A model generated the notes under the pieces. The model made no database searches, was not told the DNA's origin, and was given only the letters and a program-made list of their open reading frames with translations. A stretch of 64,000 bases of DNA from Lepidodermella squamata. Taxonomy: Eukaryota > Animalia > Gastrotricha. The translations under genes and the position numbers were made by a program. Positions 8,731 to 59,351 of the stretch are shown here, in pieces (the first letter of the stretch is position 1; the number at the start of each line of letters is the position of its first letter). The stretch is from the NCBI GenBank assembly GCA_047495785.1, contig JBLDXI010000024.1, forward strand, positions 4,712,001 through 4,776,000. The letters run 5' to 3'.

Positions 8731-9789
8731 ATGTTACAAGTTATTATTTTGCTACTATCGGTATACTTCGATCTCGTGAAATCTGAGGGAGTTGGCTGCC
8801 GATTGCCTTACATCGATGGTGGTTACATGTTGGACCCACACGAGCGCTACCTAGCTCCGAATTCAAAAGTCCTTTCCTGGACAAGGGTTACGCTTGTTTG
8901 CTCGAAGGACCGTTTCTTCCACGCAGTTTGCGGGCATGATGGCACGTTCGTGCCAAATTTTGAGCCGTGTAAGGCTGCGCAAGCTGTTAAGGTTAAATCA
9001 GCCTCTACGCCTCAATGCACATTACCTGAAGTCGAAAATGCCAAATTTACACTAGCTGGGCGGCAAGTTGCAGCTGGTACTAATTACCCTCCAGGAGCGG
9101 TTTTATACCTGAATTGCAATCCGAATTTTGAGGGGAGTGGGCAGGCCATATGTTTGAGTAATGGCACTTGGTCTCAACTTGGAACCTGCAAACCGGAACC
9201 TACAAGTTGCAATCCGCCTGTTCCTGAAGTCGAGAACGGAGAAGCAACTGGGCTGGTCGGGAACAACTCGATAGGCTCTTTATTGACAATTGTTTGCAAC
9301 GAGAATCATTTCGTAATTGGCGCCCCGTTTTCTTTATGTCAAAACAACGGACGTTGGTCTGAGCCGGGGAAGTGTGTTACTGTCACTGAAAAGGGTCCAG
9401 TAGTTGTTGAGGATGACTCCCAGGGTGCAATCGCAGCTTCAGCTGATCAACCTCCTCCTCTTTTCATACAAATCCTGAACGATCCTTTACCCCAAGCCCC
9501 TCAAAATAACCCAATAATGCAAATTCAGGAGGATCCTGTTCAGCCTCCAGATATTCTCAAGAAAGAGGATTCAGTGATAGTGAAAGCTGCAATGGAACCT
9601 GGTGGTATGGATGCTCCCGCTAGGTTCATAGTTGTCGAGAAGCCGCCGCCGAAGGAAGAGGAAATCTATTCGCAAACTTGGTTCGCAGCTCTAGCTGGCA
9701 TAGGCGCAGTCGTTGTAGCGTGCGTGGCCATCGTTATTCTAAGCCTTTTGGTTTGCCTATGCATCAACATGAACAGACCTCTTTATTGA
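8731..9789 (+). CDS. Type I membrane protein with 3 sushi/CCP domains
   Basis: Single-exon ORF with a signal peptide, three C-P..C..C..W..C modules, a Pro/Gln stalk and a C-terminal TM helix. Confidence 0.85.
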   Translation: MLQVIILLLSVYFDLVKSEGVGCRLPYIDGGYMLDPHERYLAPNSKVLSWTRVTLVCSKDRFFHAVCGHDGTFVPNFEPCKAAQAVKVKSASTPQCTLPEVENAKFTLAGRQVAAGTNYPPGAVLYLNCNPNFEGSGQAICLSNGTWSQLGTCKPEPTSCNPPVPEVENGEATGLVGNNSIGSLLTIVCNENHFVIGAPFSLCQNNGRWSEPGKCVTVTEKGPVVVEDDSQGAIAASADQPPPLFIQILNDPLPQAPQNNPIMQIQEDPVQPPDILKKEDSVIVKAAMEPGGMDAPARFIVVEKPPPKEEEIYSQTWFAALAGIGAVVVACVAIVILSLLVCLCINMNRPLY

Positions 9790-9896
9790 AAAAAACTAGC
9801 CGCACGCATATCTTTTAATACTCGTCACTCTCGCCTATTCTCGCTCATTGTAAACTACAAGAACTTTTCGCATCCGTTTATTCATTGTTATGTAAA

Positions 9897-10888
9897 ATGT
9901 TGACTCCGGTGATTGAAATCGCGGTTTCGCTTATGATTTTTGTGGTAACGGTTGCGTCCAAGCCATGTCCAGTTCCTGGCCGAGCTTCCGGAACCTTTTG
10001 GGTCGATTCTAAACCAGTAGTTGCTAATGATCCAATCGCCGTTGGGAAAACGCTGACTCTGGAGTGTGCTGATCCGAAATTCCTTTCCTTAGAGGACGGT
10101 CCATCAGAGGTGATTGTCAACGCAAATAGTAATAAAGTTAATTGTTCCTTTAACTAATTCAGGTAAGATGCCGCAGCACAGGACTGTGGAGCCAAGAACT
10201 CGGATTCTGTCGCGAGACTCCTCCCACGAGGTCCACAAGACGTACTACACCAAGGCGCCGAATAACTACGACCACCGAGGAAACTCCAGAACCAGACCTA
10301 GAGGTAGAGGAGGAAACCACAACACGAGCATCGAAGAGAACAACAACACCATCCGGTCCAAGCCCCGGCAATTGCGGTTCGCCTCCCGAGGTCGAAAACG
10401 GCGAGCTAGTGGATAACACAACTGAGACCGGGTCGACCGCAACCCGCTCAGTTCGCTACGTCAAATGCATGGATGGATACGTTTTGGCTGGGAATCCCAG
10501 GATTGTATGCTTGGCAAGCGGTCGATGGACGAATGCGCCAAAATGCTCGCCTGCGTCTACAGATGAAACGTAATTGACTGCCAATCTATTACTTCGTCTT
10601 ATTCATCGATATTTTTCTTTTGTTTGCGTTAGTACGGCACCTCCTTCAGAAGGAGAAACTCCAGCAGATGGGGGTCCTGATGCGCCTCCAGGCGAGACCC
10701 CTGCTCCGGAAGCCCAGACCGATGAGACTTTCGCAACCAATGCTAACGGTCAAAGGAGGACGACCCTTCCAATCCTAATAATGACGACCAAAAAAATCTT
10801 AACGCCAAATTATGGCCGAGCAGCTGCAATGAATGCCCCAATGGCCCTGACAGCGTTCGCTTATATCACAACTCGTTTGATGTGGTAA
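9897..10888 (+). CDS. Sushi/CCP (2 domains) plus mucin protein, possibly GPI-anchored (introns about 10110-10162 and 10570-10632)
   Basis: Spliced product: signal peptide, CPVPGRA..C..CRSTGLWSQELGFC, Thr-rich linker, CGSPPEVENG..CMDGY..CLASGRW..C, hydrophobic tail. Confidence 0.78.
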
Positions 10889-19144: not shown

Positions 19145-20557
19145 AACGAGAGACTTTTAAATTTTCTTCTTTTCATTTCACAATGTAAATGAATGATTTG
19201 AGCTGGTTTTTTGCAAAGAGGCCTTTCTATGCAGCAGCGCTTACGAGCGTATCGACTGATTTGCATATGCACAGGGCTGAGTTCAGCCATTTTGTAAGAT
19301 GCAGCTGATTTGAGTTGAATGCAAGTAATTTGCAAGTCTAAGCTGTAAACTCTAACGTTGCGAAACCGAATAGCTCCACCAATTTGGAAGCCATATTGCT
19401 AATAGGGTAGAGGTGATATTATTTTGTAAAAAAGTTACTTGTCTCGACTCCAACTGGAACTTCCCAATTGTTTTGATTGACAACTTATTGCAGTTAAATT
19501 AAGTTAAATCAGTAATTTCGCCGGAAAAAGAAAACCAATAAGAAAAATAAGGTCAAGGATAAGAAAAATAAAACCACTAAGAAACGAGAAAATAGAAAAA
19601 ATCCCGGCGAAAAGGATTTTGAGATCAAAATTATAAATTATTCCCGATGTCCAACTAGCGGAATCGGTTTCTTTCGAAAAAGATGAATGGCGCATGGTTG
19701 TAAACTCGATTTAAAATTACGAATTCTATACAAAAAGCAGAATCCTCGACTGTGGGGGTGGGTGAGGATCATTCTTCGCCTGCCTTCGCCCTCTTCAAAA
19801 CCGGAAACGGTACACGACGCTCAGTCTCGAAGAGGCAAAATAAAACTATTATTATTATTATTATTAGTAATTTCATATCAATTTAAGATTTATGGAGAAG
19901 CCAGTTTTTTGTTCTCCATACATCTTTGAGAGCTGGATTCTAATGGAAGAACTGTTTTAGAGAGTTGGGAGTACCAGTCACATTGCCTGCATTAAAATTC
20001 GCTGAACATTTGCATCAAAAGGAAAATCCCAAAGGTCTTGAAAGTTGAATGTCGGCTGCGATCGAATCTGATTGGTTGTTATGCTTAAAATCCAGCCCTG
20101 ATATAACGGTTGGTATACCTTATATACCGTATTATCAGGGAGGGGCTTCGTATTTATTAAGAGACGATTTTTGCCTGGCTTAGCTGGCGGCAAAATCGAT
20201 ATCAAACTCTCTGAAAGGATCTGACTGCGCATCGTATACGCGCAGCGTTTACGAAGGTATACGGTAAATAATGACCTCAAGATTAGCGCTGTTGCTTGTC
20301 AAAAAATGAGTATTATGACGGCCCAAGTTCTATGATTGTAATCAGCAAGCATTGTAATTATGAATTAGGACGACTTAATTACTATTAGCATCATGAGAAA
20401 GTTTGGTTGCAAAATTCAGACTCAGGATGGCATGGTGCTGTGACCATTCTTGACCATGAGACATTTACAAGAATTTATCCTAAAAGTTATTTATGCATGC
20501 TAACATGTTTTGGAATAATTATAAATTAATTTTTCATAATTAAAAATCAAATAAATA

Positions 20558-21036
20558 CCGTATTTGTTCCAATAGCAGCCCGGGCTATTAGATTTTCAAC
20601 CCCCAAAAAAGTCCTAAAAAGTGGGCTACTAATAGAGATGGGCGATTATTAGAGATGGGCGATGTGTTAGATGTTACACTGTGTTACACTGGATGTTTTA
20701 TTTGGTCCGAGCCACTCAACAGACCCCTTGAAAACAAAATTCGGCCCCATTTTGTCTTTTACCAACTGCACAGCTTTTGAAGTGTCACTCAAGTTGTGCT
20801 TAAACGAGTACTCGACCACTGAAAGTTTCTCAAGAATTTATTACATTTTGTACCGCATAGGGTATACCGCACAAAAACACGCGACCGCACAGGGGTGCGC
20901 GACACCTAGCAAGCATGTGCAATAGCCCGGGCGATTGTTAGAGATGGGCGATTTGTTTGACCCTGATGCCTTCACATGGGCGACTATTAGAGATGGGCGA
21001 CTATTGGTGAATGGGCTATTATTGGAACAAATACGG
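20558..21036. mobile_element. Tc1/mariner/pogo-type MITE nested in the CACTA-like element
   Basis: TA-CCGTATTTGTTCCAATAGCAGCCC...GGGCTATTATTGGAACAAATACGG-TA, with internal TTAGAGATGGGCGA repeats. Confidence 0.8.
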
Positions 21037-44701: not shown

Positions 44702-47700
44702 ATGAAGGCGTTGATTCTGGTCGGTGGTTATGGCACGCGTCTGCGTCCGCTGACCCTGACTAAGCCGAAGCCGCTGGTCGAATTCTGCAACAAGCCGATG
44801 CTGCTTTTCCAAATCGAAGCCCTGGCAGAGGTTAGTTCACGCCAAATTTCGAAAATTTAGGTCAAAATGCCAAAAATTCAGTGACTAAATGAGAAGTAAA
44901 CAAGGTTTTTAATTTGATTGAAATTCTACATTTTTAAATTATTTTGGTGAGCTTAATTCTAGAATTAGAGATTCAACTTTGAGAAAATAACCAAAATTCC
45001 CTTGAATTTCTTTGAAAATTGAAAATTGATGAATCGTAAATCTGAACTGAAATCGAATTCCGACCCTTGTTTCTTGGAATATTTGTCACAGCGGCTCTAT
45101 AAATTCCGGACTTTGCTATATAAATGCAAATTTCGTGCCGTAAGAGCCGTAAATCGAAATCAGACCCGACGCGGGAAAGTGTCGAGGCTGCACGTATAGC
45201 CTAGATTTCGATCTCTACAGCACAGACTAGTCGGTTCTACATTTTCACTCAAAAAATTTCAGGCTGGCGTGAAACTGGTCATTCTCGCCGTTTCCTACAT
45301 GTCCGACATGCTGGAGAACGAGCTGCGCCACGTGGAGAAGGAGCTCGGCATCCGCATTGTCACCTCGCTGGAGAAGGAGCCGCTGGGCACGGCTGGTCCG
45401 TTGGCGCTGGCCTCCGAGCTCCTGCTCGCCGACCCGTCGCCCTTTTTCGTGCTCAACAGCGACGTGATCTGCGACTTCCCGTTCAAGGAAATGATCAAGT
45501 TCCACCAGTCGCACGGCGGCGAGGGCACGATTGTCGTCACCAAAGTGGACGAGCCGTCCAAGTACGGCGTGGTTGTGTACAAGGAAGAGACTGGTCTGAT
45601 CGAGCGATTCGTCGAGAAGCCGCAGGAGTACGTGTCGAACAAGATCAACGCGGGGCTGTACATTTTTTCGACGTCGGTGCTGAAGCGCATCAAGCCCGTG
45701 CCGACGTCGATTGAGAAGGAGATCTTTCCGCAAATGGCTGCTGATAACAAGCTGTTCTGCCTACAACTCAAAGGTTAGATTTACACTTCTTGCTTACTTC
45801 TCAGTCTCAAATTCAAAAATCGAGGAATGATATATTTGTTGAATCTGTCGAATTGTTCAATCAAACAAGGTGCCGCTATTTTTGTTAGCACTGAAAATCG
45901 AAAAAAATCGGAAATTTTTATTTATTTCTGGCAGATGAGAATTTCGAACATTGAAGTAGCTAAAATAGGAATCTCAAAATTAGCTTTATTTCATGGTTAA
46001 ATATTGCATCCCACATTTTGATTCACTTTTACGGTATCGAAAATCGTTGGTGATGAAAAATTTTCCATCGGGAATTGAAAAAAATGAATAAATGAAATAT
46101 TTTTCTCTGAATTTGCTAAAAATCATTCGATAGTAAGAAGTGAGGAGTTCGTCTTCAAATTTAGAATTTGCTATCAAATTTCCTCAAATTTTAGAATTTG
46201 AATACAATCCAAATCCGCAAGCCTTAGCGTTGGGAAATCGTTATATTCGATTATTGATTTATTTTCTTTAAGGGAGTTGAAATGGATTGGAATTCAAGTT
46301 TTTTATTCAAAATCACTATTTTTTGAAAAAATTAAAACATGTCTAAAAATCGAATTGTTTTTCGAAAATTTTCTCCGAAATTTGAAAATTTGCAAAAATT
46401 GAAGCGCTCATCTTGTATGAATTTTGACAATAGTGATTTATCAACGAATATTTTAATTTCTCGATATTTGTGTCGTGCTCTTGTGTTATTCCTCTTTGTG
46501 CTTCTCACCACTCGAGGAACGTCAACCAGAGCATAAATTACATCACAACCAGTCTCTACGGGTAGCCGATTTAAACTCTTCGGACAAACAAATCGATTAT
46601 CTACTAAACTCTGGCTACATTTTACTATTTTTCTTAGGCTTCTGGATGGACGTCGGCCAGCCGAAGGACTACCTCATCGGCACAGCCATGTACCTGGCCT
46701 GGCTGCGCGAACGCAGGCCGCAGGAGTTGTACGCGGGCGAGGGCGTGGTCGGCAACGTCCTCGTCGATTCGACGGCGACCATCGGCAAGAACTGCCGCAT
46801 CGGTCCGAACGTGGTGATTGGGCCGGGCGTGGTCGTCGAGGACGGCGTGTGCCTGAAGCGATGTGCAATTCTCCGCGGATCTCGCATCAAGTCGCACTCG
46901 TGGCTCGATGGCACCATCGTCGGCTGGTCTTCAATCGTCGGTCAATGGGTGAGTCGATTTTTTTTCAAATCGCCTAAAATAAGTAGACCCCTGCTCTGCC
47001 GTTGCAATTCCACCCTACCAACTAACGTTTATCTAACGTGTGCTCGTGCTTTTTAAACACTCTTGTTGTGTGTTTTAATTTTCTATTTATTTTTCGATCC
47101 GTTTGCCGTGGCTCTGTCACTTGATTGCGAGTATATTAACATTTTGAATGTAACGAATGATTCGAAGTTTTCTCACCTGAATGATTATCGTTTAGTTTTG
47201 TTTTATCGCACTTCGATAGCAATTTGGGCTTGTAATTTTAGTAAAATCCCATTTTTCATCCACATAGAACTTTCCATTTTGACATTTGGTCATCCTTTCT
47301 CGTCAGAGATCGAGAACTTATTTTACCCAGTGTGAAGACATTTTTTCGAAGTAATGTTTTAGTTAGCTTTTTTCATTTTCATACTTGCCCTATTTTTCGT
47401 TTAGTATTTCGCCGTTTCATTCTTATTAGCTTGAAAAAAACGAGAATATAATGAAACAGGAGCTATTTCGATTCTACCATGAAATGATGGGATAATATTA
47501 TCCTATGAATATCGATATCATTAGCCCATTAGCATCAGGACCTATATTTTTGCCACTCAATTTTTCAAAATATTTTTTCCATTTTTTAGAAAAAAACTAG
47601 CGCGTAGAATGCAATTATTTTTCTTTTATTCAATTTACCTTTTCTCAGTCCTAATATTCTTATTAGTCTAATATTGAAAATTTCCACCGCAATATTTCAA

Positions 47701-49318: not shown

Positions 49319-52300
49319 ATGGTAAAATTGATTTTGTTGCTGTTTTTCGCTGCCGGAGTGGCCGCCCTGGACAACGGCCTGGCCCGCACGCCGCCGATGG
49401 GCTGGCTGTCGTGGCAGCGGTTCCGCTGTGAAATCGACTGTAAAAACTTGCCGGATGACTGCATTTCCGAGAATTTGTACATGGCGATGGCGGACCGGCT
49501 GGTTGCGGATGGCTACCGCGATTTGGGCTACGTCTACGTGAACATCGACGACTGCTGGTCGGAAATGGCGCGCGACAACACAACGAAGCAACTCGTGGCG
49601 GATCATGTTCGCTTTCCGCATGGCATCAAGTGGCTGGCTGATTACATGCACCAGAGGTCCGATTATATTTCATACACATTTTGGTTGAAAAATCTTTTTT
49701 CGGTTAAAAAAATTCAGAAAAAATTGTAAAAATTGGAATTTGAAAAGACAAGATAGGATGAAAATTGCAGATGGCAATAACAATTTTGGAAATTTTCACA
49801 ATATACTTTGATTTTATTGAAAATACTCCAAGGAATTGGAAAATTTCGACATCAAAGTGAAAAATGAGAGTGGGATGGGTCGTTATGGAATGGTAGCGAG
49901 GCCCTTACATTCTGCACTTGAAAATGTTGGGCTTATTAATCCATAGGATCAATCATTTGATTATTCAGATTCTAAGCTATGCTAACAAAAATGATTTTAT
50001 TGCAATAATTGTTTGCACTCGTTAAAACGAAAGAGAGAGAGAGAGAGAGAGAGTTCAGCTGGAGTGTGGTTCCACCAGGCTACCTTTTTTCCGTAGTCTG
50101 ACCCTAGTAAGTTTTTCCGTTCTAAGAAAAGCAGTGGTTTTTTACCGTAGTCGCTACGAAAAATTGTCTGTTCAGGCGTGACTCCTCTTACTTTTATCAG
50201 CTTGCAACGAGTTGAGACATTAAACTACGGAATCGGCGGCTTCAATAACTCGGCTATTCAATTAAAAAGACATAACGCGTTACTCTTGCACCATCATTCG
50301 GTTTTTATTCTTTCGATAATTAAATTCGAAAAATACGGCTCATCAAATCGGCTATGCTAATTACCACAGAACCATCAAATCACGGATCACAGGAATCAAA
50401 TATCATCAAATGAATCAAATACTATATTAAATTAAATGCAGTTCAAAAAGTTTTCCAGAATTAGCAGCTTTTGCTGCGGGAATTGGCGTAATCAACGCTC
50501 TACCAAATTCAGAAGAGCCAGGGACGTTCTTCAACGACGCGAGACGCGCTGATTCGGGAGCACTTTCGGCGTCACTTTCGCTAGTTTTTTGTTTTCCAGG
50601 GGCATGAATATAAGCCTAAAACTTTCCAACAACGCCTTAAAGTCAATCGACGTATCAGCTCTCCACAATCTTGATGGTAAAGACGTCGTGGGAGCTGATT
50701 GCACGCTGATAAGCATTTATAATATTTTGAAATATATTTTGAAATATTTATTTCCATGTTTAAATTAAATTAATTAACAACATTTATCGCAGGAAAACTG
50801 GCTGCTTTTTTGGTTAATTGCATCACGCTCAGACATTGGATACTCGTTGTTTTTTCTGCCGTAGTCTTTACCGTACTTTTACCGTACTTTTACCGTACAA
50901 TTACCGTTGTGCTACGGAAAAACTACGGTTCAAATCGTGTGTAGCTGGAAATTTATTGAACCTCGTCAACGTAAAAAAAAAGAAAAAATCAACAAAATTC
51001 ATTTGTTCAAGCACGCCGCCGCGCCAGCAGCAGTACCACCGTGGAATTTTGACTCGGCAAACGCAACGCTTAGTGCACCTCTTTTGACAATCACAGACGT
51101 AGTATTTTCAAGCTGTAGCTTCGGCATGGTCAGACGCCTGCTGTCGGCCTCGTCATCGCTAGAACTTTCGAGGACTGCCCGTCTTCGGTTTTTCGACGCC
51201 TTCTCCTGGGGTTTCTTCTTGTCATAGGGAATAAAGAGGAGGATACAAGCGAAACACAAAAATTGAAAAAATTGATTTTTCGTAATACTTAATCAACTGC
51301 AACAGTACTTGAATTTGTTAATGATAATTTTATTCAAAATGTTTAGGGGCCTGAAACTGGGCATCTACGCCGATTACGGCCTGTTCACCTGCGGCGGCTA
51401 TCCCGGTTCAATGGGCTACTTCGACATTGACGCCCAGACGTTCGCATCGTGGGACGTCGACTCGGTGAAATTCGACGGTTGCTTCAGCGACGCTTCCACC
51501 GATAAAACCGGCTACCCAGGCTTCGGGGCTGCCCTCAACAAAACCGGCCATCCTATGCTGTACTCGTGCGAATGGCCGCTCTACGAATGGGTCAATGGCG
51601 TCGCGTCCAACTACACAGCTATCGCTCAGACGTGCAATTTGTACCGCAATTTCAACGATGTTGACGATTCGTTCGAGTCGGTGAAATCGATCATCAATCA
51701 TTATGCGGATAATGGCACGTCATTCCTGAATTCGGTGGGTCCCGGCAATTTTCTCGACCCGGACATGATTATCGCGGGCGATTTCGGGCTGTCGTACGAC
51801 CAGCAGAAACTGCAACTCGGCATGTGGGCCATTTTCGCAGCTCCGCTTTACATGTAAGATTCGTTTCTCTATTATGAAGTGAATGCTGAAAAAATTCTAA
51901 AAATCCCGAGAAATATGTTGAGCTTTATTAATTTTCCAAAAAATAAATGAAAAAATTTGCAAAAGCCTACAAAATGTAAAAAACATCCCATCCGTTATCT
52001 GCGATTTCAGCGGAGGAAATTGATATTCAGCTGTCTATGAGGGTAGTAGAAAAATTGGTTAATCTATAGGCTCTGTATAAGGCCCTGCTTTTTCATTTCG
52101 AAAAGCGATTCCATTTTTTTAAATATCAACTTCTGATTTTTTTTAGGTCCAACGATTTGAGAAATATGCGCCCGGAAAGCGTGACTCTGCTGCAGAACAA
52201 GCTGCTGATTGCGATCGACCAGGACCCGCTTGGCACGGCTGGAAGTTTGGCTTATAGGGTAAGAAAACTCTCAGCGTTTTCATCATTGCTGCGTTAATTA

Positions 52301-55300
52301 TTGATTTATTTCGGCGATGAATAAGCAATCAATACAGCGCGCGTATTCTATTTAATATGAATAGCCCTTTTGACATCTTTACAACGTCTCTGACAGTATC
52401 AAATATTAAGCTGGCTGTTGATATTATTTATTCACGCGGCGTGCGTTATCATATAGTACGAGTACACGTGTGTAGTTGGTGTGAGCTCGTTAGGTCTAAT
52501 GCTGTAGTACGTGAGCGCGTATAATTGATAGGCGAGAAAGTGCGCGTTGTATATCGCCTGACTCTGTGGCGCAATTGGTAGCGCGTCTGACTCCAGATCA
52601 GAAGGTTGCGTGTTCAAGTCACGTCGGGGTCAACTCATTTTTCGTTTTTTTTATTTTTATTTTTTATTATTATTTTCTCGACCCGCCGATCCCGCTAATC
52701 CGCAGTAGATATCGTTAATATTCAAATACAAGCCCAGGCGGCTCTACAAAGAACATCAACGTGCCGACAAAGAGTGCTGCCTGGGTATTTCGGAATTTAC
52801 GATATTTAGAAATTGCTGGTAAATTGATGTGTTATACTTATCATAAGTAGAGAAGATTAAAATAGGGTCCTCCTGTTACCGGAACCTTTACGGTATAAAC
52901 CTGATCCTTTATATATGGTCTGAAACCACAGGATACAATTTTGTGCAATTCAAAAGTTATACGTTGTCTCAAATTGTTCGAATTATTTGAAAATACCGTA
53001 AATGTTGAAGTAATAATAGCCCGAATAATAGTAATAATGAGTCAACCGAGTCACTTTGTTAAAGCCGTACTAATGTGCGTAATAGCCCGGGCTTCTATTC
53101 GAGATGGGCTAGCATGTCGTAGTTTTATTTATATAGGCCCTCCGCCGGACGAGATATAGGCACATATGGCTAACATCAGAGCATGAACATATTCTGATGC
53201 CCCCATGGGCCCGGAATTGAGCCCAATTTTGTCGGTCTGGAAAATATCGAGGTAGTTAGCTGCAATTTAGAGGACTTACAGGCAGGGCAGGGTTATTCCA
53301 ACTCATTCATGCAGACAATGCTCAGGTTCAGCAAGGCTCAAGGGTCAGGCTATGACGGTTCAGGTTCAGGCTCCGGGCTCTGTAATGCAAGGTGATGATG
53401 AGAACAGCTTATAATAAATGACAACTGGCCTAAAGCCTAAACTATTATGGTATAAGGCGCATGGCTAGGAGCACATGGCAGAGCAGGCCGCATGACAGTC
53501 ACGTGACAAGGTGAATCATAAGCGTTGCTAAAGGAAACGACATTGACACGTGCTGCAACGACCTTGGGTTGGGGTTAGGGTTAGGGTTAGGGTTACTATA
53601 TAGCCATATATACTATATACTATACTATACTATACTATATACTATATAGCCATACTATATAGCTAATTTACTATATAGCCACCGGCCACATCCCTCCTTT
53701 TTAAAAACCAGAAACACATATTGTTAGCGACGTTGAATAACTCGGATTTAAGCTTGTTCTCATCTGTTTCAAAGTGAGAGGTTGCAAGTAACAAGTCATT
53801 TGTTTTGCCTCTTCATTCACGTGAAAAAACGCCGCTTTTTATTTGTCACCCGTTGCCTTGAAAAGGCTGTAAACAAGCCTAAATCCGAGTTATTCAACGA
53901 CGCTAACGACATCCCTCCTTTTCAAGATTGAATAATGAAAACGGAACAGATAACGGAACAGATAACGAAAGAGACAGATGAAATGCTAAATCCAAAACAG
54001 TAATGAACAACTAAAATGTCAAACATGAAGCAGCGAAATGAAATGAAATGACTAATACGAAACGATCACCACATACTCATGATAAAATCCTTAAAGCGAC
54101 CTGGCAAACCTGCATTACGTTTTGGGCGAACACTCGTACTGCTAGCACCAGATTCTGGCTGCCACGAGGAAGAAGAAGAAACATCGATGTGGTTAATAGG
54201 CAGATTAGGACTAAGAGCGGTATATACAACAGTCAGAAGTAACAATACCAACAGGAGTAGGTGATTAGTAAAAATAGATTGATTACCTATTTACCACAGG
54301 TTGATCGATGATAGATGCAGAAGCAACAGAAGATTCGGAAATAACATGGTCAGTAGAGTTAGTCGAAACAGTAGGCTGTGCAACAAATTTTGGCGCTATG
54401 TCAGGCTTTAGCTGCCAGATAGATTTTGTTTCGATCTCGCCATCTATGTCAATCATAGAATTTCCACGTACAGTGCCTACAATTTTGTACGGACCATTAT
54501 AGCGGAACTGAAATTTGCCGCTATGAACCGGAAGATTTTCGACACAAAACAAATCACCTACTGAACTACTGTCGTATTAGCGATTTAGCTAAACAGCTAG
54601 CTATTATTTCTTGAACACCCTGTATTATACGACATTTGTTATACCATTGAGCACGAGTTCAGCAATAATTCAGCAAGGCATGGTGATGCATGTTCACCCA
54701 TGGGAACGCCTTCAGTGTGTCGAAACCACACGCCATCAAATCGACATTACCGACGAAAGCGACATTAAAGTTGCTCTCCTGTTTGTCGCCTGACTAACTT
54801 ACGGATTAATGCCTCAGACTGCAGAAGCAGCAAGGTGTTGCGCTGTTGACTATTCACTTGTTCGTCGCTTTAGGTAAACTGAAACACGGAGAAACACGGA
54901 GAAAATAAAGAAAGAGCCTTGACAATTAGTAAGAAATGAGACCCTTCTCTAAAATTCTCAGAATTTGGGCTAATGCCATTTCTAGTCTGTTCTAATTTTG
55001 TCGGATTTTGACCCAATATGAGAAAAAAGATTTTCTTAATCCTTAATGGAAAACTTGAAGTAGCGAGTTTACTTAGAAATAAAATTTGCATTAGCTTTTT
55101 GGTTACTATAATATAATTTCGTTGCAGCTTATGCGATAAAGATATAAGCCGCAAAATATACTGTAATTTGCTCTTTTTCTCTATTTTCGAACCCAGCAAT
55201 CAAAAATGAACATTTTTTATTTTCTTAGAATGGCAACATTCAAATTTGGACGCGAACACTGTCGAACGGCCGTTACGCCATAGCCGCGATAAATTTCGAC

Positions 55301-55492
55301 ACGGCTGGTACGCCGACTCGAGTGCCGAAATCGCTGGCTGATCTCGGAATCCCGGTGCAGCCGAAGACCGTCTATTCAACTCTGGAAGTTTTCGAGCAAT
55401 TCTCCCTGGGGCTGTACTCGGCAGCTGACAAAATTCCGATTCGAGTCAACCCGACTGGCATTGTTATGCTTTTGGTTGAGGAGCTGCCCTGA
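49319..55492 (+). CDS. GH27 alpha-galactosidase-type enzyme (exons 49319-49656, 51347-51853, 52147-52258, 55229-55492)
   Basis: [27 protein letters not shown] and DPDM motifs. SCEWPLY is the GLA-type E/L motif. Confidence 0.92.
50032..50053. repeat. (AG)n microsatellite
   Basis: About 11 AG units read directly from the sequence. Confidence 0.9.
52560..52632 (+). tRNA. tRNA-Trp(CCA), intronic
   Basis: GACTCTG..CGGGGTC acceptor stem, TGGCGCAATTGG A box, TCTGA-CTCCAGA-TCAGA anticodon arm, GTTCAAGTC B box, downstream T-run. Confidence 0.95.
53564..53645. repeat. Short (TTAGGG)n tract followed by (TATAC)n
   Basis: Three perfect TTAGGG units plus degenerate ones, then a TATAC array. Confidence 0.85.
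53688..54570 (-). mobile_element. Ty3/Gypsy LTR retrotransposon remnant (integrase C-terminus, PPT, LTR start)
   Basis: [12 protein letters not shown] (GPY/F motif) and [15 protein letters not shown]. Polypurine tract AAAAGGAGGGA followed by TGT on the minus strand near 53910 and again near 53690. Confidence 0.75.
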
Positions 55493-55732
55493 ATGGGACA
55501 TTTTTGCGACTATCATCCAATTTTTGTCTGTTTTATCATTTCAATGCAATGATTTTATGCTCAATTTTCGATTCGCTAAAATTGTGATGGTTTAATTTAA
55601 TGATTCCGCAATGTTTTTCCATCCTGCTTTCATTTTGTTTTGCAATCCTTGGTTCAACGTTTTAGCCAGTGTTACCATGCTGAGTTTTAATAAAATTCCT
55701 GTTTTTCATTGATTTAGTCAGTTATTTTCGAA

Positions 55733-58700
55733 ATGCATTGGCCGGTCACTTCGATTTTAGTGGTTCTCGGCCTTTTCGCGGCTGTGAATTCATTGAATAA
55801 CGGCCTGGCTCGGACGCCGCCGATGGGCTGGTTATCGTGGCAGCGATTCCGCTGTCTAATCGACTGCGATCAGGACCCAGACGAGTGCATCTCCGAGAAT
55901 TTGTACATGGCGATGGCGGACCGGCTGGTTGCGGATGGATTCCGCGATTTGGGCTACGTCTACGTGAACATCGACGACTGCTGGGCGTCGCACCAGCGCG
56001 ACAATGCGACGAAAAAACTCGTCTCGGACCCGGTGCGCTTCCCTCATGGCATCAAGTGGCTCGCTGATTACATGCACAAGAGGTAAAATTTTCCAAATTT
56101 TAATTACTATGCAAATCATTATTAATATGGATGATATGCATAAGTAAGCAAACTATTTTCTCAAAGTGAAAACCAAAAATAGACTGAAATTTTCGAATTC
56201 CCACCGGGTTTTCTGTGATGATCTTGGTAAAACCAACAACTAATCGCCATTGGTTGTACTAATAATTACTGAGGTACGCGATTGACTAAATTTTTCAGCG
56301 TCTTAGGATGTTTTTCCATAAAGAGTAGAAAAATCATCGAAAATCGATGTTCGATCACCGCGAATTGAAAATATAGCATTTTCTTAGTTTTCACGAGACA
56401 AAATGATAAGGCTCTAAAAATTGCTACCCCATCGCGTGCTGCAATATTTGTTAGTACAGCCAATTTTCGTGAATTCGAATATCATGACATTCCGGATTTG
56501 CATCGAATTTCAGAGATTTTTCTAATTTTCATGAATAATTTACCAAGATGCTGTGAAATCTAACCAATTGCTTGATTCCATAATGCTTCTTGGCCCACCC
56601 AATAGAGACATCTGTAGTTCCACGAACAAAAATTATGGTTCTACTTTTTTTAGGGTAGAAGCGATTGTTAAGCCTAATATGAATTGTTTCTAATCAGGGG
56701 ACTGAAATTGGGCATCTACAACGACTACGGTACTTTGACATGCGGCGGCTACCCCGGTTCGCTCGACTATCTTCAGCTGGACGCGCAGACCTTCGCCGAG
56801 TGGGGCATAGACTCGGTGAAAATGGACGGCTGTTACTCGGATCCGAAGTCGATGGACAAGGGCTATCCGCTATTTGGCTCGTACCTGAACGCAACCGGCC
56901 GGCCGATGCTGTACTCGTGCTCGTGGCCGGCCTACCAGACGGGCGATCCGAACACGACTGTCGACTATCCGAGCATTGCCAAGTATTGCAATATCTGGCG
57001 CAATTATGACGATATCGATGATTCTTTCGAATCTATTAAAACTATTCTAGGTAAGATAACACAATATCAATACATAGAAAGGCAAGAGTATCTAAGTATC
57101 TCACTTCGGTCAAGCTTTTTGCTCTTGGTCTCTGCATTGTTTAATTATGGTTTTTGAATATGAATTTTCCATCCATTGGCTGATGAGATGTTGGGAATTG
57201 AGCAAAATCAAATCAAAGGCTGGCCTCGCTATCTCTTTGAGTAGCAGAGGCAAAGCCATTATTTGCCGAATGATATGATGAATTTCGCCTTCAACCTGTA
57301 AATAATCGTTTCACAGGCCGTTCTCGTGAACCCATCGAAGAACAGATGGATAATAATGAAAGTGGCAACCGGCGATTTCGCTCAGGAATACGAGACACAA
57401 GGCATTTATCGTTGCCAGATCGTAGTCAAAAGTCATCAGAGGTCATTGTTACCAGATTCAGCCAGCATTCCAGCCTTGAGATATTCGAAAACTTCAAAGT
57501 ACAGGCTAGCATGTTGTAGCTTATTTGGATAGGCCCTTTGCCGTTTGGCGCTGTTTGCACAGAGCTTAAGTTGCTGACTGATTGAAGGCGAGCGGAACGA
57601 GGCTTGGTCACCCGTGATTTTGAATTGTCTAAGCTGATGATAACATTGAGAGAATGGTCGTTAGTCCGGATTCCGGATTTCACATCACAGCATCGCTGTG
57701 GATGAGCAGACCGCATAATCTCCGCCTTAGCGTTTGACAGAGGGGGTTCAACGCGAGTTCAACGCGAGCGGACACCATGGCAGCAAATTCATAGCGTGGA
57801 AATGTAAGCCTCGCTTATCCATTGAAGGAGGATCGACATAGGGCGTGAGGTGCTAATTAATGCCCAGAAAGTTTGCTCGAAAATTAGTAGAATACGATGG
57901 GTCCTTTTTGAGTGAGATAAGCGGAATGTCAGTATGGGAAATTTCTTCATTATAGCAGTTATAAATTTGCGATTTTCGACCTTGTGTTCGTTATGCAGTC
58001 CTGCATTGCTTTCAGAATCATTTTTTCATCTCGCTCGGTCGTATCCCTCATAGAAGTCTTTATTTCATGCAGCTGGGTTGAATACCCACTGGCTCCTGGA
58101 ATTCGCTAACTACAGACTTTTGGCAAAATAACTAATTTTATATTAGAAATTTAAATTCTGTGTTCAGTGGCTCTTCTATGGAACCAGAATCATTTGTTGA
58201 TCCTGACGAATTTGACGTCTTTATACCAGACGTGACCGAATCAGACCTGTTTGGAAAAGTCAGCGACCGACTCCGCGTTGGGTATCTCTCCGAAGCACTA
58301 GAAAAGCCTAAGTTCCCAGTAACTGGAATACTGCTTGGCAATTATCGTCGCCCGATGGTGTCTCTCACTGTCGCAAAGAAAAGCGGAGGAAAGGGCATAC
58401 ATGTTATTTTTGCTGTTGACACTAATTGTCCGACTACTTACGTAACGAAACGTGTTTTCGACACGCTGCTCGGAGAAGGATTGGCGGTTCCTCAAACGAC
58501 GTGTCTGAATGTTCATGGTTCAGTTTTCGAGGTTTCGTTATCCCGTGCACATTTTTCCAACATCAACTTGGTTGGAGCTGATTTTTTCTATCGCAACAAT
58601 TGCAAAGTCCTCTTGGATTATTCGATGCTTGATGTTACCATTTTTCAACCAGATATGGAACAAGCATAGTTTGAATAGCAAACCAGATTAGAATGATGAT

Positions 58701-59351
58701 AGCGAATAACAGTATACTAAAGCGATTTACAATTTGAAAATTTGAAAATATCTGATAAAATCAGCTGAATTCTGATCAATTAAAAATTACTCGAATTTTC
58801 TAGATTTCTATGGCGACAATAAGGACAGCTTTCTGGACGTTGCCGGTCCCGGTAATTTTAACGACCCTGATATGGTCATCGTAGGCGATTTCGGCCTCTC
58901 CTACGAACAACAACGCGTTCAAATGGGCATGTGGGCCATGCTAGCCGCCCCGCTCTACATGTCCAACGATCTGCGAATGCTGCGCGAAGAATCGAAGGAT
59001 CTTCTCCAAAACAAACGCCTCATCGCAATCAACCAAGACCCGCTCGGCATTTCAGCTCGGCGCATCTACCGCTTGGAGCAGAATAGCGTCAGTGTTTGGA
59101 CCCGAAAACTGGCTGTTGGCGCTTGGGCAGTTGCCGCTGTGAATTACGGCATTTACGGCACGCCGTATCGATTCAACGACACGTTGGCGCATTTGAATGT
59201 GACTGGCGCGTCGAAGTTCGTTGCTTCAGACGCGTTTACTGGCGAAATGGTGGGCACTTTTGGCCTGAAAGATGCCGTGCCGTTCGTTGTCAACCCGAAC
59301 GGTATCGCCATGTACGTTTTTGTACCGGCGGCTGGGCTTGTTCAAGCTTAA
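55733..59351 (+). CDS. NAGA: GH27 alpha-N-acetylgalactosaminidase-type enzyme (exons 55733-56082, 56698-57050, 58804-59351)
   Basis: [25 protein letters not shown] (NAGA-type S/A motif), NDPDM and [11 protein letters not shown]. Confidence 0.9.
58178..58669 (+). CDS. Retropepsin-like (aspartic protease fold) ORF nested in NAGA intron 2
   Basis: 163-aa intact ORF with [14 protein letters not shown] and a C-terminal NLVGADF, matching the clan AA pattern. May have upstream exons. Confidence 0.6.
   Translation: MEPESFVDPDEFDVFIPDVTESDLFGKVSDRLRVGYLSEALEKPKFPVTGILLGNYRRPMVSLTVAKKSGGKGIHVIFAVDTNCPTTYVTKRVFDTLLGEGLAVPQTTCLNVHGSVFEVSLSRAHFSNINLVGADFFYRNNCKVLLDYSMLDVTIFQPDMEQA

Follow-up and report, generated by a model that had tools for sequence, protein, structure and literature searches.

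A tandem pair of GH27 genes in the gastrotrich Lepidodermella squamata and the probable independent gain of its alpha-galactosidase-type pocket

The DNA considered here (the "window") is a stretch of 64,000 nucleotides from the gastrotrich Lepidodermella squamata (NCBI GenBank assembly GCA_047495785.1, contig JBLDXI010000024.1, positions 4,712,001 to 4,776,000 of the forward strand). It harbors a head-to-tail pair of intron-bearing GH27 genes, G1 followed by G2, both on the + strand. G1 displays the Glu/Leu (E/L) pair that lines the pocket of human alpha-galactosidase A (GLA), and G2 the Ser/Ala (S/A) pair of alpha-N-acetylgalactosaminidase (NAGA). A tandem E/L plus S/A pair of this type is old, being conserved in a diverged relative (genes R1 and R2). 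Together with two unlinked paralogs of the same genome (G3 and G4), these genes form a clade of their own, apart from vertebrate GLA. As a whole, the data are best explained by a lineage-specific pair whose E/L pocket was gained independently of vertebrates, a reading held to be probable.

The original prediction had read SCEWPLY in the first gene and SCSWPAY in the second as the two-residue specificity switch of the human enzymes, and both motifs hold as read. Each is found once in a six-frame motif search of the window. The G1 motif aligns gap-free with CEWPLY of human alpha-galactosidase A (PDB ID: 1r46), and the G2 motif with CSWPAY of chicken and human alpha-N-acetylgalactosaminidase (PDB IDs: 1ktb and 3h53). 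Alignment with the human GLA precursor places the two differing residues at GLA 203 and 206, equivalent to NAGA 188 and 191. The Glu203/Leu206 pocket of alpha-galactosidase A is found in G1, G4, and R1, and the Ser188/Ala191 pocket of alpha-N-acetylgalactosaminidase in G2 and R2. Thirteen further GLA active-site residues (W47, D92, D93, Y134, C142, K168, D170, C172, Y207, R227, D231, D266, and M267) are intact in these same five proteins, including the catalytic Asp pair formed by the nucleophile D170 and the acid/base D231. Among the residues compared, the active sites of G1 and G2 differ solely at 203 and 206: G1 has the residues of human GLA, Glu203 and Leu206 included, and G2 shares with chicken and human NAGA the Ser/Ala pair and an otherwise identical active site.

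The gene models were built from open frames, Pfam coverage, and GT/AG splice sites. Database searches used one exon at a time, or the intronless gene of the relative, and the spliced proteins served only for alignments and trees. The features of the pair are as follows.

49319-55489, + strand: G1, four exons, 406 amino acids, ATG at 49319.
49319-49656, + strand: G1 exon 1, encoding the signal peptide and the first part of the GH27 barrel (ATG frame, PF16499 positions 1-87, GT donor at 49657, joined frame open).
51347-51853, + strand: G1 exon 2, encoding the catalytic core, including the nucleophile Asp and SCEWPLY (PF16499 positions 92-258, E 1.4e-68; AG acceptor and GT donor).
51564-51584, + strand: SCEWPLY of G1, Glu/Leu at GLA 203/206 (motif search and alignment).
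52147-52258, + strand: G1 exon 3, end of the barrel (PF16499 positions 259-284, splice sites, colinear with the ortholog of the relative).
55229-55489, + strand: G1 exon 4, C-terminal beta-sandwich and stop (PF17450 E 6e-12, AG acceptor at 55227-55228, resemblance to the C-terminus of R1).
55733-59351, + strand: G2, three exons, 416 amino acids, stop ending at 59351.
55733-56082, + strand: G2 exon 1, encoding the signal peptide and the first part of the barrel (PF16499 positions 1-89, E 3e-40; donor codon and phase as in G1).
56698-57050, + strand: G2 exon 2, catalytic core with SCSWPAY (PF16499 positions 90-204, E 2e-49).
56915-56935, + strand: SCSWPAY of G2, Ser/Ala at NAGA 188/191 (motif search and alignment).
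58804-59351, + strand: G2 exon 3, remaining barrel, beta-sandwich, and stop (PF16499 positions 202-284, PF17801/PF17450; joined frame colinear with the intronless R2).

Both genes belong to GH27: the barrel exons match PF16499 (Melibiase_2, the catalytic (beta/alpha)8 domain) with E values of 1e-32 to 1e-68, well over the curated 23-bit cut-off, with the sole exception of G1 exon 3 (37 amino acids), which scores 20.2 bits when taken alone. PF17450 and PF17801 identify the C-terminal beta-sandwich on G1 exon 4 and G2 exon 3. Exon 4 lies 3 kb past exon 3 and just 244 bases ahead of the G2 start codon; it is assigned to G1 because of its frame, its PF17450 match, and its likeness to the C-terminus of R1. 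The intervening intron 3 (52259-55228) is, with its 3 kb, unusually long for G1. Both proteins start with a hydrophobic N-terminal signal sequence.

The same pair is carried by a relative. An exon-level word search returned a protein fragment that shares 85% identity with half of G1 exon 2. The contigs of the relative come from three ENA metagenome assemblies (pair at L011:3996-6700 and L012:3649-6353) and display, in this order, an NTP-transferase gene (GMPPB), R1 (SCEWPLY, one intron), and R2 (SCSWPAY, intronless, 413 amino acids). At 45269-45694 and 46646-46909, the window aligns with the GMPPB exons of the relative at 87-89% protein identity, and the upstream synteny is therefore real. In the window, no counterparts were found of the kinase and p450 genes located downstream on L011. 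Beyond exon 1, orthologs are more alike (67% protein identity for G1-R1 and 73% for G2-R2) than G1 and G2 are (53-54%). The nonsynonymous divergence (dN) between orthologs is 0.22-0.26 and the synonymous divergence (dS) is saturated. Low dN with saturated dS, together with the same gene order, indicates an old pair in which both pocket types are under purifying selection in both species.

Other sequences were met in these searches. The exon-level hits P0301 and P0135, 65-68% identical over half of exon 2, belong to large multi-exon eukaryotic genes in ENA assemblies. The ENA metagenome contig L014, from another eukaryote, holds two GH27 genes, with S/D and S/A pockets (9741-10879 and 19586-20836), about 9 kb apart and with a Pao-type retroelement between them; the first copy is frameshifted. 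L014 was dropped as a comparison, as the partial protein P0287 falls outside the clade of G1-type and G2 genes.

Functionally, the two-residue switch has an experimental basis in the human enzymes. There, Glu203/Leu206 occupy the space that Ser188/Ala191 leave free for the N-acetyl group. According to PMC5478728, which cites Tajima 2009 and Tomasic 2010, the S188E/A191L exchange in NAGA abolishes activity on 4-methylumbelliferyl (4MU)-alpha-GalNAc and raises alpha-Gal activity. A human GLA chain carrying SCSWPAY is also found in the PDB (PDB ID: 3lx9). G1 and G2, a conserved tandem pair that is presumably expressed, would be secreted or lysosomal-type retaining exo-glycosidases of GH27, differing only at the two residues that would wall the pocket beside C2 of the sugar. 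The Ser/Ala pocket of G2 should leave room for the N-acetyl group, and G2 is likeliest an alpha-N-acetylgalactosaminidase with some side activity on galactosides. The pocket of G1 would be filled by Glu/Leu, making G1, and likewise G4, likeliest alpha-galactosidases, dedicated ones in the case of G1. This predicted split of substrates between G1/G4 and G2 is drawn from the two residues only, all other pocket residues being the same.

The residue difference could also have little functional meaning, both enzymes having a similar or broad specificity and the pair being kept for dosage or differential expression. The single GH27 gene of C. elegans, GANA-1, an invertebrate member of the GLA/NAGA group, is credited with both activities (PMC548690), and residue 206 differs widely from one S-type animal enzyme to another (A, V, D, F, or Y). 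Against this, the two substitutions suffice to abolish the GalNAc-cleaving activity of the human enzyme (PMC5478728). Furthermore, both species retain the E/L as well as the S/A pocket although their synonymous sites have diverged to saturation, and the rest of the pocket matches GLA and NAGA residue for residue. A mere dosage or expression role is thus held to be unlikely, and a division of substrates is preferred. Unlike C. elegans, L. squamata possesses four GH27 genes, with the pocket types split between neighbours.

A PF16499 scan of the genome (121 Mb, 151 contigs) reveals these four genes, namely G1 and G2 plus two unlinked copies.

Contig C2, about 788800-789800, - strand: G4, five exons, TCEWPLY (E/L), active site intact.
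Contig C23, about 217900-218900, - strand: G3, SCKWPYE, open frame of 409 amino acids, degenerate active site.

In G3, W47, D93 (D93N), Y134 (Y134N), the nucleophile (D170E), Y207, D266 (D266G), and M267 (M267V) are lost or changed, and the specificity positions hold Lys and Tyr. Judging from these replacements, G3 has probably lost catalytic activity and may be either a pseudoenzyme or a young pseudogene. A single step separates its Lys codon, AAA, from the Glu codon GAA common to G1, G4, and R1, as would be expected if G1, G3, and G4 descend from an E/L ancestor.

The first exons of G1 and G2 have a separate history, which bears on how their similarity is to be read.

49373-49658, + strand: gene-conversion tract in G1 exon 1, with its partner in G2 at 55799-56084; 84% nucleotide identity.

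In exon 1, nucleotide identity is 84% between G1 and G2, as compared to 71% and 74% for the ortholog pairs. The dS between the paralogs is 0.47 in exon 1 versus 1.68 in the remaining gene. Within the tract, the alignment shows uninterrupted identity over stretches of 43-44 bases, and the likeness ends at the exon-intron border. The strong likeness of the two exons is due to gene conversion postdating the split of the two species. The original prediction had described adjacent and similar paralogs: the similarity is real, but in exon 1 it reflects conversion, and the duplication itself is not recent, given the relative with the same pair and the saturated dS. The tract stops short of the specificity residues in exon 2. 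Outside exon 1, no conversion is visible, with the paralog dS at 1.68 and orthologs closer than paralogs.

The phylogeny was determined on an alignment from which the converted exon was left out. Sequences were gathered by an exhaustive search of 50%-identity representatives with G1 exon 2, by cluster look-ups, and by a word search with R2; the vertebrate GLA anchors came from a word search with P0011, which returned vertebrate GLA only. The sampling includes vertebrate GLA and NAGA, a tunicate, echinoderms, arthropods, molluscs, annelids, a brachiopod, a nemertean, a coral, and protists. The careful tree was computed with IQ-TREE under LG+C20+F+G4 by the posterior mean site frequency (PMSF) approximation, on 45 rows and 291 columns starting at GLKLG. 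In this tree, G1, G2, G3, G4, R1, and R2 form a clade with a support of 100/100, composed of (G2,R2) at 98/89 and (G1,R1,G3,G4) at 100/98. This six-row clade is nested in a lophotrochozoan clade, itself supported at 100/100. Vertebrate GLA (100/100), Styela with vertebrate NAGA (99/98), and the gastropod E/L genes (95/93) form separate clades. The paralog clade is also recovered in FastTree and quick PMSF trees of 100, 70, and 55 rows, and the GH27 protein of the bdelloid Rotaria falls outside it in a quick tree.

Approximately unbiased (AU) tests agree with this topology. They reject a tree that unites the G1-type genes with vertebrate GLA (log-likelihood difference 30.8, p 0.021), one that unites these genes with all lophotrochozoan E/L genes (difference 33.3, p 0.021), and one that unites G2 and R2 with chordate NAGA (difference 53.1, p 0.0015). 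By tree and AU tests, G1 does not belong to the orthologous group of vertebrate GLA, nor G2 to that of chordate NAGA. The phylogeny excluding the converted segment, proposed with the original prediction as a check, places G1 with G2 and two paralogs rather than with vertebrate GLA, and the suggestion that the E/L form of G1 arose independently of vertebrate GLA is supported.

The pair might instead be of ancient orthology. G1 would be the ortholog of GLA and G2 that of NAGA, both stemming from one duplication that preceded the split of the Bilateria, and repeated conversion would have masked this origin everywhere except at the selected residues. The solved structures appear to speak for it: the best match of G1 exon 2 is human GLA (200 bits), with about 50% identity in this core exon and a common GH27 fold according to Pfam, and those of G2 exon 2 are chicken and human NAGA (158 and 142 bits, versus 125-129 bits for GLA). 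Conversion between G1 and G2 does occur, and their adjacency favours it. However, these better scores are partly due to the motif region itself, and the six-row clade keeps its full support without exon 1. G3 and G4, which lie on other contigs, also fall within it, and two of the AU rejections given above, as well as the dS and ortholog comparisons outside exon 1, go against such masking. Ancient orthology is accordingly very improbable, the least likely of the explanations weighed here. In the tree, G1 groups with its S/A neighbour despite sharing the active site of human GLA, and the S/A state of G2 is likely the ancestral one, as the protist outgroups and the coral also carry Ser/Ala.

A duplication at the level of the spiralians would preserve convergence with vertebrates only. 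The G1-type genes would then have a common origin with the gastropod/nemertean E/L clade, and G2 with the mollusc/annelid S/A clade. The position of the six-row clade, inside a lophotrochozoan clade that holds separate E/L and S/A groups and whose basal branches are short and partly unresolved, is compatible with such a scenario. It conflicts with the 33.3 log-likelihood units lost under the E/L constraint, with the AU rejection that goes with them, and with the maximal support of the six-row clade, and is therefore considered quite unlikely.

Several points weigh against a lineage-specific origin and should be kept in view. In exon 1, concerted evolution is at work on the pair, and older, eroded conversion across the remaining gene could make the paralog clade look stronger than it is. 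The AU tests bearing most directly on convergence, two in number, reject at only p ~0.02, and the branch of vertebrate GLA is long and poorly placed. The phylum of the animal is thinly sampled, with one relative represented by the R1 and R2 rows only. Finally, a quick tree adds to the clade, on a long branch, a fused tandem GH27 protein of Fasciola. This protein, P0349 (Fasciola gigantica, 716 amino acids, annotated as alpha-N-acetylgalactosaminidase), comprises two GH27 copies, residues 1-300 and 304-715, and probably represents two tandem genes fused by annotation.

Under the preferred, lineage-specific reading, G1, G2, G3, and G4 would have arisen from a Ser/Ala ancestor by duplications in the animal's own lineage. 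Glu/Leu would have been gained once, on the stem of G1, G3, and G4, separately from vertebrate GLA and from the gastropod/nemertean Glu/Leu genes. Conversion would later have homogenised exon 1 of G1 and G2 while sparing the specificity residues of exon 2.

Introns add little on the pair itself. The original prediction had described the two neighbours as sharing intron 1, and this intron does interrupt the same codon of G1 and G2 in the same phase (phase 2, within the Arg codon preceding GLKLG). Yet it is common to all four paralogs; it is therefore ancestral to the family and uninformative on the G1/G2 pair. Among the further positions, a second is common to G3 and G4, a third to G1 and G4, and a fourth to G1, G3, and G4, and G2 has one private intron. 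The relative has lost intron 1 in both R1 and R2, and the sole intron of R1 occupies a position found in G3 and G4 and missing from G1. These differences show intron turnover between the two species.

Intron 2 of G2 holds an open frame on the + strand (58160-58666, 169-177 amino acids) that has no Pfam match. Five diverged copies, 34-55% identical and most of them stop-free, occur elsewhere in the genome. Its language-model neighbours are eukaryotic clusters (0.96-0.98); retroviral-like aspartyl proteases (0.88) appear as weak leads. The frame is absent from the relative, where R2 is intronless. It may be a nested gene belonging to a small family.

E/L pockets are also found in other animals. 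The genes annotated "alpha-galactosidase A-like" in gastropods and a nemertean (among them those of Gigantopelta, Littorina, Biomphalaria, Haliotis, and Lineus) carry them alongside S/A paralogs, as in L. squamata. They nevertheless form their own clade, and joining them with the E/L genes of the window is what the second AU test rejects. E-type genes exist in ticks and mites as well. The minimum number of E/S changes is three on the careful tree and seven on the 70-row tree that includes the tick and mite E-type genes, the latter count resting on the quick version of that tree. The convergence proposed in the original prediction is thus supported, although it is recurrent and not special to this genome. 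In the 2005 gana-1 paper (PMC548690), the genes of C. elegans and of insects fell outside the vertebrate GAL and NAGA clades, an independent duplication in insects being raised as one possibility.

G1 and G2 themselves are ordinary GH27 members. What looks new is the evidence for a lineage-specific reinvention of the E/L pocket, and such reinventions look common. In a literature search of incomplete coverage, which does not prove novelty, no account of the E/L pocket arising repeatedly in animals was found. The two residues rank with the best-validated specificity determinants known for any human lysosomal enzyme pair, and the same two are used in engineering a NAGA-based Fabry therapy. A natural, adjacent E/L plus S/A pair that probably evolved independently and is present in two diverged species provides a clean test of the repeatability of this switch, and allows the sufficiency of the two changes to be checked in a different protein background. 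The pair is also a warning that the annotations "GLA-like" and "NAGA-like" of invertebrate genes mirror the pocket type and not orthology. More broadly, the balance tips slightly towards the Glu/Leu pocket being a repeatable invention, made from a Ser/Ala dual-activity ancestor after separate duplications, at least three times on the careful tree and possibly seven times or more with ticks and mites. If this is true, animal "alpha-galactosidase A" would be a polyphyletic functional class, and the GLA-like genes of invertebrates would not be orthologs of the Fabry gene.

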